From positions 3,348,001 through 3,412,000 of the forward strand of contig NC_087261.1 of NCBI RefSeq assembly GCF_037042905.1: 64,000 nucleotides of DNA. The letters run 5' to 3'. The stretch is from Lytechinus pictus. Lineage: Eukaryota. Of the stretch, positions 1 through 21,022 are shown piece by piece. The position numbers and the translations under genes were made by a program. Each line of letters starts with the position of its first letter. The stretch's first letter is position 1. The notes under the pieces are model-generated. The model worked only from the letters and a program-made list of their open reading frames with translations. It had not been told where the DNA came from and searched no databases.

Positions 1-278
1 GGGGCAGGGTCAAGCGCCCTCATAGCACCCTTCCCCATATATACCCATGTTATTATGACATTATAGAATTTGTGATATTTAGGCCCAATGATATATTATA
101 CACCCTTTCCCACAATTTTCTCGGTCACCCATAGGCCTAGTTATTAATCTTCAATTTTTATGAAACTGTCACGCGCCTACAGAAAATGATGATTCATCGC
201 AGTTCATATAATCCTTTTACTTTTTCTGCCCCCCCCTCCCCCACAACAGAGCAATTAATTCCTAATTCCGATAGAATG

Positions 279-560
279 GAACAAGCTGGTACGGTTTGGT
301 ACGTTTAGGAAACGGCACTATCTGTAAACAACATCATGTGATTGGTCGCGACCTCGTTCCCAAGATAACGATGACGTCATTCTTCCTATTCAACGTTGTG
401 CATACGTTTGTTTACAAGTGTATGGAACAGAACAATGCTGGTACGGCACGGTACGTTTCGGAAACGTGTCAAAATGAAACCAAAACTGCAACGTAGCAAT
501 TACGTTGCAGTATAATACAGGGAGGTATATATAGGGATAGAAACGGGTAGTATATTCATT
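279..560 (+). promoter_or_regulatory. Core and proximal promoter of the 767-1966 gene
   Basis: TATATATAG 526-534 with Inr-like TCATTC (A at 558, 32 nt downstream); perfect CRE ATGACGTCAT 371-380; reverse CCAAT 341-345; TCATGTGA 334-341; forkhead sites GTAAACA 324-330 and TGTTTAC 409-415; no ATG between 558 and 767. Confidence 0.7.
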
Positions 561-766
561 CGCTTCCTGGGTTTCAATTCGATACAATCAGAATTTGCTG
601 CTCGTCTCTAAACCTGATCTTAACCTGGTTCAATTTGTTGTTTTAGGAGAATATTCCTGCGATAGAACAGTTTACATCAGAAGTATATATTTTCAAGAAT
701 TGACCAGTCGCTAATAACTTATATTGCCCGGGTTATTTCGTAGTGAAAGAAGGAAAGAACATCATA

Positions 767-1966
767 ATGCACGATCGTGGAGCAGGAGCATCAGGCATGG
801 GGACGAAACGGAATGAATTCCCTTCTCGTTTCGAAACTGATCAACATGCGGAAGGAGATGACGGCTTGCGTCGAGCTCCGTGTGAATGGATGCCTGGTGG
901 AGGACGTGGACGACGTCGGGCAATGATGGCGATGATGATGATGAATCACTCAAGTGCTTACGGAATGAATCACGGTTTCGTCTTCGGCGGGAGAGGAGGC
1001 ATACGTGGGCACCATAGAGGTTGGTCTGGCTCCGGGGACTGGGGTCGACGACATGGACATGGTGGACGAGGTCGACGTGGATGCATGGAATATGTGGTCG
1101 ATGATGACGATGAAAATGTGGCATCAATGGCAGACCAGATGAACGAATGTCATATGAATGAGGGGCGGAAACGTCATGGAAGTGGATCGAGTGAATCGTC
1201 GTCGAGCAGCAGCAGTAGCAGCAGCAGTGAGATTGATGATGAGGAGAACGCACCCGATGGTGATGTCAAAGAACAACAGCCACACGACGAGGTTCATGAG
1301 TTGGAAGGGCAGTCCACTGACCAAGCTCAACAAGAAAGCAATGAGGCGGATAAAGAGCAAGAACCGTCATCGAGCGCTCGCCGTGGTAAGCATAGATGCA
1401 GACATGGGCGTGGTCATCAAAATCATCGCCTCGGTAAGCGTAAACATCATGGCCACGCCCATTTCCATATTACCTTGACACCTCGACCAATGGCACGTCA
1501 TCCCTGTGGATTTAACAGACCACCAATTCCTCCCATGTATCATCATCTCTTCCATGATCACCATGGCAACCACCACATGGGCAAGAAGTTTTTCAAGAAA
1601 TCCATGAAGCAGTGGTTTAAGGCACAGAGAAAAGCTTGGAAGCAACAGCAGAAGAATCACCATCAACGAAGACAGAGATCAGATGGTGACGAGGCGACCT
1701 CTGGATGCGAGAATGATGAGGAGTGTGCTCACGAAGAATCCGGATGTCAACTTCCCCCTCCATGGCTCTTCTTTGAATACGATCACCATGGGCGTGGTCA
1801 TCGACCAGGATTCTGCCGTCGTGGTAAGAAAGGAGAGAAACTCGGAAAACGGCTCAGCAAACGAAGTGGTGAACGACCAGGGACTGCTATATACAGAGGA
1901 CGCCGCGGCTACCAAGACCCAGAAGGAAGCTGTCAACGATGTCGAGAAGGTACACGAAATCCATGA
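767..1966 (+). CDS. Uncharacterised 399-aa low-complexity protein (Gly/Arg-rich, poly-Ser, acidic, His-rich); single coding exon
   Basis: 1.2-kb ORF, clearly more GC-rich than its flanks; first ATG at 767 with A at -3 (the ORF track starts at an upstream GTG); TATA/Inr upstream and AATAAA downstream. The C-terminal frame is uncertain (see findings). Confidence 0.8.
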   Translation: MHDRGAGASGMGTKRNEFPSRFETDQHAEGDDGLRRAPCEWMPGGGRGRRRAMMAMMMMNHSSAYGMNHGFVFGGRGGIRGHHRGWSGSGDWGRRHGHGGRGRRGCMEYVVDDDDENVASMADQMNECHMNEGRKRHGSGSSESSSSSSSSSSSEIDDEENAPDGDVKEQQPHDEVHELEGQSTDQAQQESNEADKEQEPSSSARRGKHRCRHGRGHQNHRLGKRKHHGHAHFHITLTPRPMARHPCGFNRPPIPPMYHHLFHDHHGNHHMGKKFFKKSMKQWFKAQRKAWKQQQKNHHQRRQRSDGDEATSGCENDEECAHEESGCQLPPPWLFFEYDHHGRGHRPGFCRRGKKGEKLGKRLSKRSGERPGTAIYRGRRGYQDPEGSCQRCREGTRNP

Positions 1967-2249
1967 CGAAAGCGACGGTGAGCACGCACCGATGGAGGCC
2001 GCTGAGTGAACAACGGGTGAAATTTAATGTGCATTGTATATATAACTTTTTGTTCTTTTGTTTATAAACTTGTGTTTCGTAGTTTCATTTCTGTGACATC
2101 GCTTAGTTTATATTTAACATGATAAAACTGCAAACCAATGATACTGATATTGATACTGATATTAATGGACAAACTCTTGATATCTTGTGTTGAAAACATT
2201 TCGTTCTAAACTAAAACTTCTTATTCAAATAATGATGATCTGTGATAAT

Positions 2250-2255
2250 AATAAA
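2250..2255 (+). terminator. Poly(A) signal of the 767-1966 gene
   Basis: AATAAA followed about 30 nt later by the T-rich tract TGTTTTCTCCTTTTCT. Confidence 0.6.
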
Positions 2256-3199
2256 CCAATCATATTTTATACGCTTGTATACAATGTTTTCTCCTTTTCT
2301 GGCCGTGCACACAATAATATTCTTTACGACAAATAAACTGGTACTTCAAATTTCACCACTCTATGAAATAGATATCCCCCGGGAAGCTAATATCTAATTA
2401 AGTGTGTTTCATGTTATGAATATGCATGTAGCGTGTAAGATAATTAAAGATTCATTTTACTCTTTTTGAACAGAATTCGGATGAATAAGTAGTATCCGAA
2501 TCAACTATCATTTAAATTGTTTTGTGTGTGTGTTTTATCAGTTTAGTCGATGTGATAATAATGACTGATAATGATTTTTTTTTAAATGTTTAATGCATAG
2601 ACACTCGCCTTCAAAAAAAGGTTTCGCTTTGATCAAATGACTCGTGGAATTTCATCAAGCCGAGTGGCAGAGACTGCAATTAATATTAGGATAATAATTT
2701 GTAAATAATGTATACATGTGGCGTAAAGCTTGTTTCTTGAAATAATGTCATAAACATACCTTTCTTGTATTACTTGTAATTAATAATGCATGAAATAAGT
2801 ATTGATTGGTAACTAAATAGTAATTTAAAAAAAGCAAAAAAGCTAGAAATAGAAGATAAAGCAAGTAAGAGAAAAATGAATTTATGTTAAAGAGCTTGGA
2901 TTCTCTTATGACAGTGCTGATCTACATGTATTATATTACTGTATTATTATGCCGTAATAAGAATTGATGAATAATTAGGATTGAAATGATATCTTTAGAA
3001 TTTAAAAATATAAAGTTTCGCTTATGGTTTATAACTTGTTCGTATAATCATGTTTATACTTACCATTAAAATAATGTATTATTGTAAATGTTGACTGAAA
3101 CTGGAATTTGTTCTCTTGGTGAAATATTTCCGATCTGATATTAATGAATCATTAATATCACATTGTAAACTAAATGAAATGCATTTATGATGGCGATGT

Positions 3200-4225
3200 G
3201 AGGGGGGAAGAAGAGGGGGGAACAGAAAGGGTTTAACGGGAGGAGATGGGGATGGAGAGAGAAGGGAAGGAGGGAGAGAGGGGAGGATGGTGTAGGAGTG
3301 AGAGAGAGAACGGGGGGGGGGGGGAGCAAATTGGGAGGTAAAAAGGAGAAGGGAAGGGATTGGAGGGGCTCTTGCACATGTGTAATTGAATAAAGCAAGG
3401 ATAAAAGTTAGAGGAAATAAAGAGAGAAAAAATATGGAAAGAAATGGGCATGTGTGAGAAGAAAGACAATTCTAAGCTTGGAAGATAAATGAATGTAGAC
3501 CCATGATAAATATTTTCGATTGCGTGAGTGAATGAAAGAGAGAGAGAGGGTGTGTGTGTGAGGGGGGGGGGGCTGTACAGATATCTCAACCATTCTGAAA
3601 TTTGTGAAATATGTTGTTTGGAAAGGATTGTTCCATTTGTTATAGTTTGACTCTACCCCTCCTATACCAATTACCCCCTTTTAAGCCAGATATTTGCATA
3701 AACTTTCACTCACATTCTTACTGAATTATTCCCATCTATCTGTACCCGGCCTAGCTCCCTCTACCTTCACACCACCCACCCCCGTCCTCTCATATCCCAG
3801 TCAGTCCATTTTCATCATTTCAACTCTTTTTCTCAAGTACTTTTTTATTTTTCTTTCTGCCCCCAACTCTCACTTCCTCCCTTCCTTCACTCTGCCCCCT
3901 TCTCTCTCACCCCTCCCCCATTCCCTTTCGTTTACCTTATTTCCTCCCCCCCCACTCCTGTTTCTAACCTCTCCCTCGCAAACTCTCTCTCTCACACGTT
4001 CCAGTCCCTCTCTCCCTTTGTTTCGCTAAGCCTCCTCCCCCTCTCTATCCATCTTTATTGCTCTTTGCATTTTCGTTTCCTAATTTCCGACCCCACCAAC
4101 TCCTTTCTCTAACCGCTCCCCGCAAACCCTCTCTCTCAACAAGCTCCAGCCCCTTTCCCCACCCCCTCTCTCTCAATATCCCCCCTCTCTCTCAATATCC
4201 CCCCTCTCTCCAATCCCACCCCTAT
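3200..4225. repeat. Low-complexity purine tract (3200-3575) followed by a pyrimidine tract (3740-4225)
   Basis: GA/G-rich then CT/C-rich degenerate microsatellites between two convergent gene ends. Confidence 0.85.
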
Positions 4226-4274
4226 GCTTACCAGCTTGATATCAGAATCTACATTGGAAACAAAAAGTGGGCAC

Positions 4275-5030
4275 TATTTTAAATAATTAAATCGTTTATT
4301 TTAACAATATCTTTTACACCAACATTTTTTGAGAATGGAATTCTTACAAAATACATGTAGGAATAATCATAACGGACCGTTCCAGTATAAAGGGTATGTA
4401 ATTGTCTTATATCAACAGAAAAAAAATATAATTTTGTCAAAATGTAATTAATAAATGATAATAACAGCTACATGATTGTTGAATATGACTTTATGGCTTT
4501 GTAAAAGTAGGACATTTCAAGGGAACTTTATTGGAATCGAATTCTGGACGATGAAACATTGCTGCCACCATAACCGGTAATAAACCGACCTCTGATCTTG
4601 GACACTTATGCTGTAATGCTATAGTGACACAAACAAAACTGACCTCTGACCAACCAAAGACATTACATTGTCCCGGAATAGCATATCATCGGCAGGGTTT
4701 AACTTTGAGTTGGTTCCGTAGGTGGGACTCTAGCATTATGGTCAACAACATTCTGTTAGGTTACAAAGATGGTTATGATAATATTGGAACCAGGCACTTT
4801 TCCTGGAGACATCGTGGCACGTTCACACTGAAGAAGATTGTATGTCTTGCACCATGCTACCATTGGTAGATCCTAGGACTAGTGTGAACACTGCACATCG
4901 TCTGTTGCTGAAGGGGAATGCCAGTTGGTTTGAGGAAGAGGTTACTTTCATCTCAGTCATCTGAACATGATGGTATCCTGTTGATGCTCATGTAGCACTG
5001 GTGATTCACAAGGGGGTCATAAAATTCAAT
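4275..5030 (-). other. OST4: OST4 exon 3 (3' UTR only)
   Basis: Minus-strand acceptor TTCTCTCTTTTCTGTTCTTGGTAG|ATT (AG at 5032-5031); AATAAA on the minus strand at 4532-4527 and 4300-4295; 3' end approximate. Confidence 0.65.
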
Positions 5031-19728: not shown

Positions 19729-21022
19729 CGTATACATATTTGTTGCCCCCATTGAAATGACATTATAATCTTACTAACACTGGTTCTGTAATGAACGTCT
19801 GAATCTAAATTGTGGTTGAAAAAAACCACCATATATTTATTATACAACAAAAACGACAAAAAACAAAACGAATACAGCCTCTAGTGCGAAACAAATAAAA
19901 GTAAAATATCAAAAGTCGTATTCAGAAGGAAAATTCATAAAAACATAACTACATGTACAAGTAATGCATTTAAAATCTCGCCCGAACGCTAGCATATCTA
20001 ACATAGCAATTAGAACAAGATTCATTAAGTATTTATGATTATGACTAATTCAATTTCTTGGTCGCTTTGTAACTACCATGGCAACAGGTCTCAGCAGCCA
20101 ATCACAATCAAGGTTTCTATGGTAGTTACAATAATAACAGTTTTACCATAGAAAACAGACCCTTGACACTGCCATCATATCAGGGATCAACAACGCTTGC
20201 TAGGTAGAACCATCTGCCTGATAAAAAAGCAGATCCATAAATTGATTAGACTATACTCCTGCTTAATAAAACATTTAGTATTGTTTCCATTATTACAACC
20301 GATGCCTCTACTGAGTCAAACAGACACTCGCTGCAGTAATTCTGTCAAAGTGCAATAGCGCCACCTGACGTTGGAACTTGTGAACATTTCAAAGAGAATT
20401 AGAAATTTTATCTGACCCATCAATGAACTCATATTTAAACTCAGTTCTGTGAGATCCACAGACCTTAGTGACGTAATGATGGTTTTCAATTTTCTTGTTT
20501 ATGCTTCTTTCGCACACCGTGATGTTTTCACCAGTTGGAACAAAAAAATAAGGCTGGTCGCCCCTCTCCGCCCCCGCTGTGGATGTATTAAGAGGCCGAG
20601 AAAGGTGTTTGGTTTTATTTGGTTAATTAATTAATTAATGAATAAAAAAGGGGTCTCGTCGACACTGTTCTCAAGAGTAAGATATCACTGAATTGATAAA
20701 CTAAAAGAAAAGGGGTTACCACAAAAGAAAAAAAATGTTATCACGATTCTAGCGGGGGGGGGGGGGCTTCTATTAGCGTTGATTTGCATAATTCAGTGGC
20801 AGCCCAGAATAGGTACATGTAGAGACCACGATCGGCCACGGCATGCACCGCCAAATGTTTCTTTGATTTTGTTCTCCAATCGTGCTTTAATTCTTGTAAA
20901 TATTGTGATTTTCATGATTATTTTTAAATAGAAACAAAATTACATTAAAAAAAATATTGACACATGACCCAATATATGGCCTTGATTCGACACAGAGTTT
21001 TTTTTTTTTACTACTACTATGT

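Follow-up and report, generated by a model that had tools for sequence, protein, structure and literature searches.

The 64-kb stretch of sea urchin (Lytechinus pictus) DNA analysed here (contig NC_087261.1, positions 3,348,001 to 3,412,000 of the forward strand; hereafter the window) carries near its beginning a bona fide protein-coding gene, which extends from position 558 to about 2100-2280 and whose coding region is a single exon. Its open reading frame (ORF), the longest of the window, runs on the plus strand from 767 to 1966 and specifies 399 amino acids plus a stop codon. The gene is the third and last copy of a tandem array, and its family is, as found so far, restricted to sea urchins. 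Overall, the best explanation, to which we would give an even chance, is a real gene of a three-copy urchin family, represented in the window by a frameshifted copy, whose product would serve as a disordered ribonucleoprotein (RNP) scaffold. The parts of the transcribed region are as follows.

558-766, plus strand: predicted 5' untranslated region (UTR), ATG-free
767-1966, plus strand: ORF of the window copy, 94-97% identical to its paralogues and matched by BLASTP in Strongylocentrotus purpuratus
1888-1891, plus strand: 4-bp TATA insertion, absent from the other copies compared
1893-2009, plus strand: ancestral acidic tail, out of frame; the +1 frame is open to a TGA
2063-2068, plus strand: TATAAA, candidate poly(A) signal, aligned with an AATAAA of S. 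purpuratus
2250-2255, plus strand: AATAAA, found in this copy only

The original prediction, made from the sequence of the window, had described a compact and complete transcription unit, and its TATA box, initiator, ATG-free leader and single ORF are all present (526-533, 558, 558-766 and 767-1966); the 3' end of the ORF departs from that description, being a frameshift product. The predicted start is the A at 558, within the initiator TTCATTC (555-561) and 32 nt downstream of the TATA box. The predicted 5' UTR of 209 nt holds 0 ATG triplets, a state reached in 1.3% of shuffled sequences. A 5' UTR intron was considered, with an acceptor-like TTTTAG|GAG near 649, and was rejected on the loss of the AG context in a third species and the want of a good donor. 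The AATAAA that had been taken as the poly(A) signal does exist, yet it is private to the window copy, copies A and B reading CATAAA at the same place. The sole AATAAA of the S. purpuratus copies, 61 nt past the stop, aligns with TATAAA at 2063-2068, which is thus a candidate signal, and the end of the predicted transcript (about 2100-2280) is uncertain. The two ATTTA motifs (2022 and 2112) had been part of the ground for inducibility; they lend it no support, as their number equals the shuffle expectation of 2.0 and the 3' UTR, 48% identical between species, cannot be aligned. A 12-bp tandem duplication in the 3' flank (2139-2163, TGATACTGATAT x2.1) occurs in the window copy only, and copies A and B carry a 14-nt GA-rich insertion a few bases beyond its site. 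Rfam searches (including the histone 3' stem-loop) and tRNA searches gave no match. Among eight sequencing runs of the same species, 49-87% of the stretch's words were found in contig sets of 89-193 M letters, to be compared with a genome of 811 Mb, and in four studies of a sister species, twelve runs contained a constant 14-16%. Such set sizes fit transcriptomes and would be an indirect sign of expression, the run types being guessed.

A six-frame search of the 811-Mb genome returned three copies, all on one strand of one contig, with starts at contig coordinates 3333757 (A), 3341097 (B) and 3348767 (C, the window copy). Copies A (3333757-3335004) and B (3341097-3342344) precede the start of the window by 14.2 and 6.9 kb; both are intact, encode 415 amino acids each and possess a conserved acidic tail. 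The copies are spaced by 7.3 and 7.7 kb, and the paralogous proteins are 94-97% identical. By self-comparison, whole repeat units, non-coding DNA included, are 90-94% identical over 2.5-3.7 kb, and the array extends to about window position 4600. The S. purpuratus locus likewise holds two intact tandem copies 7.1 kb apart. This likeness of unit length in the two lineages (7.3-7.7 kb here), together with the grouping of the copies by species, points either to an ancient array whose units were kept alike by unequal crossing-over or gene conversion, or to duplications that arose independently with units of similar length. A decayed third copy in S. purpuratus is inverted (L006:4095-5308, minus strand, AAGJ06000013.1, about 26.92 Mb); its ORF stops after 158 amino acids, with similarity continuing with breaks, and an inverted fragment of the conserved promoter (L006:7262-7486) is found at a distance of ~2 kb, as though an insertion had separated the two. 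The tandem array, the S. purpuratus gene models and the frameshifted C-terminus had all been missed by the original prediction.

Beyond the genome itself, a word-indexed search of 5.8 billion proteins gave one cluster, whose representative, S. purpuratus XP_030839518.1 (UniRef A0A7M7NP15, LOC587965), bears the automatic name 'hornerin'. Older models of LOC587965 (XP_011673117.1 and XP_011664983.1) appear as 'uncharacterized LOC587965' and 'POU domain class 3 TF 2-like', and both this last name and 'hornerin' are low-complexity artefacts of annotation pipelines. The S. purpuratus orthologue is collinear over its full length (BLASTP 56% identity, E 3.7e-123, 94% coverage) and is 65% identical when aligned against copy B. 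An exhaustive HMMER profile search of 1.84 billion representatives found only two family clusters and no match to a characterised family. The sole addition was P0002, a 407-residue protein from a single 8.4-kb contig of European Nucleotide Archive (ENA) assembly ERZ26222911, which is 38% identical (E 5.7e-26) and preserves the block order: MHDxG, PCxWM-GRGR, RGG, DDE..SM..C, poly-Ser/acidic, His-basic, Pro/His, KKSMKxWxKxQxKAWK, QxPPPWxF, GHG, GxRPG and an acidic tail with PMEE. When P0002 was used as the query in the window's genome, it matched the same three copies only. The S. purpuratus cluster also includes a member from Logan contigs of a strongylocentrotid-like third species, whose DNA is 91-94% identical to S. 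purpuratus. The contigs that encode this protein (P0005) look like genomic DNA rather than RNA evidence, because L008 includes the promoter, upstream of the predicted start, and L007 runs ~1 kb beyond the stop. L008 has a normal promoter; in L007 (1-148) the promoter and the first ~35 nt of the leader are replaced by unrelated sequence, which may reflect an additional, rearranged copy or a join made in assembly.

No record matched exactly the protein of copy A, of copy B or of the window copy, and region-restricted protein searches added no further homologues. With only urchin relatives and one ENA-assembly sequence recovered among 1.84 billion proteins, the lineage-specific character that had been proposed stands. 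As to the accompanying suggestion of undescribed biology, the literature library searched made no mention of the LOC587965 locus, of its accessions or of 'hornerin' as a sea-urchin gene; the family was already predicted in S. purpuratus and has never been studied.

Low-complexity composition and the lack of a known domain would be expected of a chance ORF in GC-rich DNA that is no gene at all. That reading is nevertheless effectively refuted by conservation and appears to us vanishingly improbable. The frame is uninterrupted in all intact copies compared, an ORF of 399-415 codons staying open in six sequences of three species with a 38%-identical homologue besides, and it is accompanied by a conserved TATA/initiator promoter; it is also the longest in 64 kb. 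The Nei-Gojobori dN/dS ratio between lineages is 0.29-0.33, at a dS of about 0.7, so that the ORF is not only kept in related urchins, as a genuine gene should be, but kept with a dN/dS of about 0.3; among paralogues the ratio is 0.40-0.46. As judged from these comparisons, the coding sequence and its block order are under moderate or relaxed purifying selection. Relaxed purifying selection is typical of disordered proteins, unlike diversifying immune families.

At its 3' end the window copy departs from the family. An extra 4 bp, TATA, at 1888-1891 (the placement is ambiguous within 1888-1893) shifts its frame and is absent from paralogues A and B and from three strongylocentrotid sequences. 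The acidic tail ...TEDAAATKTQEEAVNDVEKVHEIHDESDGEQAPMEAAE closes the protein of paralogues A and B, of both intact S. purpuratus copies and of the third species; the window copy ends IYRGRRGYQDPEGSCQRCREGTRNP* in its place, so that a conserved acidic tail of 38 amino acids is exchanged for 25 unrelated basic residues. The old tail is still open in the +1 frame (1893-2009), with 38 codons and a TGA at 2007-2009. With the 4 bp removed, for alignment only, it reads TEDAAATKTQKEAVNDVEKVHEIHDESDGEHAPMEAAE*, which differs from copy A by 2 amino acids and ends with the PMEE motif common to the distant homologue P0002. The family-typical end ...APMEEAAE is thus out of frame in the window copy and present in copies A and B. 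Variants near the insertion, C1899, G1905/C1906 and A1921, also distinguish copy C. By this alignment the stop at 1966 is to be regarded as a product of the frameshift and not as the family's native end. The near-identity of the displaced tail, with only 2 amino-acid changes, means that the event is very recent or else an artefact of assembly or polymorphism; the insertion would be a very recent 4-bp slippage, with a polymorphism or an assembly slip as alternatives, and the window copy represents either an allele that was altered recently or is decaying, or an assembly slip.

It is possible, if on the doubtful side, to go further and to see in copy C a pseudogene of recent origin, or an allele without function, within a tandem family that evolves by birth and death, the function being carried by copies A and B. 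The tail that the frameshift takes away is conserved even in the 38%-identical homologue (PMEE), S. purpuratus too has a decayed copy with a displaced promoter, and the AATAAA is one of several 3'-flank differences specific to the window copy. Yet the promoter and codons 1-373 are undamaged, the dN/dS of C versus B (0.44) is like that of A versus B (0.40), the tail has changed so little that the event must be very recent or an artefact of assembly or polymorphism, and a truncated protein could still work. It is far less probable that a 73-nt GT-AG intron (1824-1896) bypasses the frameshift, so that the conserved tail is still made. Such an intron can be drawn (GG|GTAAGA at 1824, TATACAG| ending at 1896, opening the frame to 2009) but was rejected, because it would delete the conserved basic block GKKGEKLGKRLSKRSGERPG, because the donor position reads GAGAAG, with no GT, in S. 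purpuratus, and because the intronless copies A and B have no need of it; moreover, 73 nt is very short.

Conservation differs markedly from one region of the locus to the next. Identity to S. purpuratus is 47% far upstream (1-270), 83% in the promoter (271-556, 282 aligned bases), 58% in the 5' UTR (557-766), 77% in the coding sequence (767-2009) and 48% in the 3' UTR (2010-2290), so that a promoter of 290 bp is better conserved than the coding sequence. The elements listed below were compared as footprints in four promoters from two species.

271-556, plus strand: conserved proximal promoter, 83% identical to S. purpuratus
285-331, plus strand: composite element copy 1 (GCTGGTACGG..GGTACGTTTAGGAAACGG), direct repeat D1, invariant core
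334-341, plus strand: E-box TCATGTGA, candidate MITF/TFE/USF-type site (factor assigned from the consensus), in 4/4 promoters
372-379, plus strand: perfect palindromic cAMP response element (CRE)/ATF site TGACGTCA, within ATGACGTCAT, in 4/4 promoters
437-483, plus strand: composite element copy 2, direct repeat D1, with palindrome ACGTTTCGGAAACGT and an RCGTG core at 464
485-511, plus strand: perfect 11-nt inverted repeat ACTGCAACGTA / TACGTTGCAGT containing two ACGTWGCA units, largely conserved in S. purpuratus
526-533, plus strand: TATA box TATATATA, aligned with TATAAATA in S. purpuratus
555-561, plus strand: initiator TTCATTC with predicted start A558, conserved

Direct repeat D1 is 47 nt long, its two copies being 74% identical at a spacing of 152 nt and its core invariant in 4/4 promoters. 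This composite element contains GGTACGG, GTACGTTT and GGAAACG, to which copy 2 adds the palindrome. Four GGAA cores, the single RCGTG (464), the TATA box and the initiator are likewise invariant in 4/4 promoters, and CATTCGCTTCCTGG around the initiator is invariant in both species. Within the genome, the promoter module is unique to the three copies, and the 16-mer GTACGTTTMGGAAACG of the composite element is found in these promoters only. No conserved heat-shock element (HSE), metal-response element (MRE, TGCRCNC), NF-kB, STAT, interferon-stimulated response element (ISRE) or antioxidant site is present in the promoter. The promoter thus suggests tight, specific and possibly cAMP/ATF-linked control and does not speak for the classic heat, metal or immune pathways; the inducible immune or stress effector that had been envisaged accordingly finds no support. 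The factor names attached to these sites are inferred from consensus sequences. The conserved promoter is the most concrete lead to come from this locus, a compact and testable cis-regulatory module, and reporter assays are routine in sea urchins.

The protein itself consists of compositional blocks in a fixed order.

875-943, plus strand: APCEWMPGGGRGRRRAMM and poly-Met block; P-C-x-W-M and GRGR invariant, P0002 included
986-1081, plus strand: RG/RGG- and His-rich basic block, by composition and family alignment
1178-1366, plus strand: poly-Ser/acidic tract (CK2-type by consensus) and acidic Gln-rich linker, net charge about -15
1376-1576, plus strand: His/Lys/Arg-rich block followed by a Pro/His-rich block, by composition and family alignment
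1577-1678, plus strand: basic amphipathic helix, the only confidently predicted structure, by AlphaFold and hydrophobic moment
1745-1801, plus strand: CQLPPPWLFFEYDHHGRGH block; Q-x-PPPW-x-F invariant, P0002 included

The best-conserved 50-nt bin, 1751-1800 (96% nucleotide identity to S. purpuratus), falls within the last of these. Given the alignment of six sequences, AlphaFold returned a mean predicted local distance difference test (pLDDT) score of 40, in agreement with the disorder that had been proposed, and one helix of moderate confidence at residues 271-308 of copy B (pLDDT 60-74); the protein is thus predicted to be disordered apart from a single basic amphipathic helix. The hydrophobic moment of this helix, 0.64, is reached by 0.3% of shuffles (p about 0.003) and is 0.67 in P0002. 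One of its faces presents F/F/M/W/F/A/W and the other Lys/Arg, its KKSMKxWxKxQxKAWK is invariant in the family alignment, and its prediction as a homodimer scored 0.03, which weighs neither for nor against dimerisation. The 415 residues of copy B include G 52, R 43, E 39, H 35 and S 31, with charge in alternating blocks (+4 to +9 and -5 to -15) and an overall K+R-D-E of +1. RG dipeptides number 13 in the window copy, with 1 strict RGG, and are concentrated in two stretches, residues 44-51 and 74-105. Cys39 and Cys130 are invariant, and most Cys are not kept in P0002.

The sequence motifs first reported for the window copy are present as described: the KKFFKKSMKQWFKAQRKAWKQQQK helix, PPPWLFF, HGRGH x2, RRGK x2 and a 16-mer, CATGGGCGTGGTCATC, that occurs twice in the ORF, at 1403 and 1787. 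The 16-mer is shared by 3/3 paralogues and takes degenerate forms at both S. purpuratus sites, from which it would appear to be an old internal HG(R/C)GH motif pair. It is the sole internal repeat, and Tandem Repeats Finder (TRF) detected no tandem repeat inside 767-2009. The absence of a signal peptide and of a recognised domain was also borne out. The N-terminus, MHDRGAGASGMGTKRNEF, is hydrophilic and has no leader, as judged by inspection rather than with a predictor program; Pfam gave no match at E <= 1 beyond compositional noise, ESM Atlas searches of the protein returned nothing, and a PDB profile search yielded weak compositional matches only, to MPP10 (E 0.42) and NDUFV3 (E 0.013), on the acidic/Ser part.

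Candidate RG/RGG clusters, a CK2-type tract, Lys/Arg/His blocks, blocky charge and a single sticky helix lead us to propose, tentatively, that among the modes of action considered the likeliest is that of a multivalent nucleic-acid scaffold, located in the nucleus, the nucleolus or RNP granules. The product would be a disordered, charge-blocky polyampholyte with a net charge of about +1 and 35 His, ordered as an RGG/His basic block, an Asp/Ser-acidic block, a His/Lys/Arg basic block, the amphipathic basic helix, and then acidic, basic and acidic-tail blocks. The RGG boxes would bind RNA together with the basic blocks, the acidic tail and the phosphorylatable Ser/acidic tract would compete with the RNA as intramolecular counter-ions, and the many His could make binding sensitive to pH or metal. 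In the window copy, the internal competitor that the acidic tail may represent would be lost. Recurrent tandem amplification and an intronless gene with a TATA promoter suggest a need for rapid, high output, which would be under CREB/ATF-type control. Several points weigh against this proposal and the account of the family on which it draws: nuclear localisation and RNA binding are read from composition, the protein has no canonical nuclear localisation signal and no RNA-binding domain, metal binding would account just as well for its richness in His/Cys, the broad aromatic face of the helix would also suit binding to membranes or calmodulin, and the family may be wider, as few echinoderm proteomes may be in the libraries searched.

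Of these points, the His/Cys content leads to the view that the protein is a cytosolic Zn/Cu/Ni buffer or metallochaperone, in which the HGxGH motifs, His runs, Cys and N-terminal Met-His would bind the metal and the rest would be spacer. Its 35 His in 415 residues, the HGxGH-type motif at two positions in both urchin lineages (with HGHGH / GGHG in P0002) and the invariance of Cys39 and Cys130 are what such a protein might show. We nonetheless consider it unlikely, since a conserved metal-response element (TGCRCNC) is missing from the promoter, P0002 does not share most of the Cys, and the RGG boxes, Ser/acidic tract and amphipathic helix are left unexplained. Membrane-active or immune roles have, in our estimation, only a slender chance. 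An elaboration of the scaffold proposal, offered as a long shot, is a pH- (or metal-) switched urchin-specific RNP or condensate scaffold that would retain RNA or partners while the pH is low and let them go on activation. With a K+R-D-E of about +1 and 35 His, the net charge would fall steeply across pH 6.8-7.4, the interval covered by the rise in cytoplasmic pH by which sea-urchin eggs and sperm are activated. If such a switch were true, a dedicated regulator would act through the deeply conserved, gene-specific elements of the promoter.

Downstream of the gene, the DNA at 3000-3252 and 3291-4600 is strongly strand-asymmetric and of low complexity, with a GC skew of +0.64 and then of -0.42 to -0.48, and CT-rich repeats of 18-19 nt and 145 nt occupy 3926-4223. 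The strand-asymmetric stretch recurs behind copies A and B at 76-82% identity, and the second S. purpuratus copy is likewise trailed by a CT/GA-rich stretch (L006, about 20000-20500). The remainder of the window (4700-64000) contains no ORF of at least 130 amino acids with a Pfam match, multi-exon genes not having been looked for, and no tRNA or Rfam family at gathering score. In a tblastx comparison of the flanks, the S. purpuratus neighbour, a PARI_N gene, was unmatched within 40 kb upstream and 17 kb downstream.

Taxon-restricted disordered proteins are common and are rarely given a function. This family stands out by its constraint, its tandem amplification in two urchin lineages and a promoter conserved above its coding sequence, and the duplicated promoter element, found nowhere else in the 811-Mb genome, adds to its distinctiveness. 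As a candidate His-tuned scaffold, the protein is tractable. The misleading database name 'hornerin' is corrected, and the C-terminus of the window copy is revealed as the result of a frameshift rather than a second exon.

In comparison with known systems, the likeness to the SpTransformer (Sp185/333) proteins that had been pointed out beforehand extends to the Gly-then-His order and fails every other structural criterion. Members of both families are sea-urchin-restricted and disordered, with a Gly-rich region before a His-rich one, and are encoded by small clustered genes. SpTransformer genes have two exons, the first encoding a hydrophobic leader, and their products carry an RGD between the Gly-rich and His-rich regions (PMC5491942); some 50 members form element mosaics with diversifying variation (PMC5491942). 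The present family is leaderless by inspection and has one coding exon, no RGD, 3 copies in this genome and purifying selection. An SpTransformer-like immune effector, or a precursor of a cationic antimicrobial helix, might still be entertained from the shared block order, the cecropin-like basic amphipathic helix and the clustered, small, intron-poor genes, but it is highly improbable in light of the missing leader and RGD, the one coding exon, the mere 3 copies without an element mosaic, selection that is purifying and not diversifying, and a promoter with no conserved NF-kB, ISRE or STAT site. The profile search of 1.84 billion proteins brought up nothing Transformer-like among its matches and hence no homology, no direct SpTrf alignment having been made.

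Hornerin and filaggrin, the S100 fused-type proteins of vertebrate skin, resemble the family in a Gly/Ser/His/Arg-rich composition only, the source of the automatic name; unlike them, it has no S100/EF-hand head and no long tandem repeat units, and its length is 10-fold smaller. With nucleolin, Nopp140 and the intrinsically disordered regions of the Ddx4 type there is an analogy of mechanism only, through candidate RG/RGG boxes, a CK2-type tract, charge blocks and predicted disorder; the family differs from these in having no RRM, helicase or other folded domain, no homology to them and an unusual richness in His. The comparison with S. purpuratus LOC587965 differs in one respect, the acidic tail, which is intact there and frameshifted in the window copy; the two are the same in their collinearity over the full length, their single coding exon, the arrangement in tandem copies (about 7.1 kb apart in S. 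purpuratus) and the elements of their promoters.

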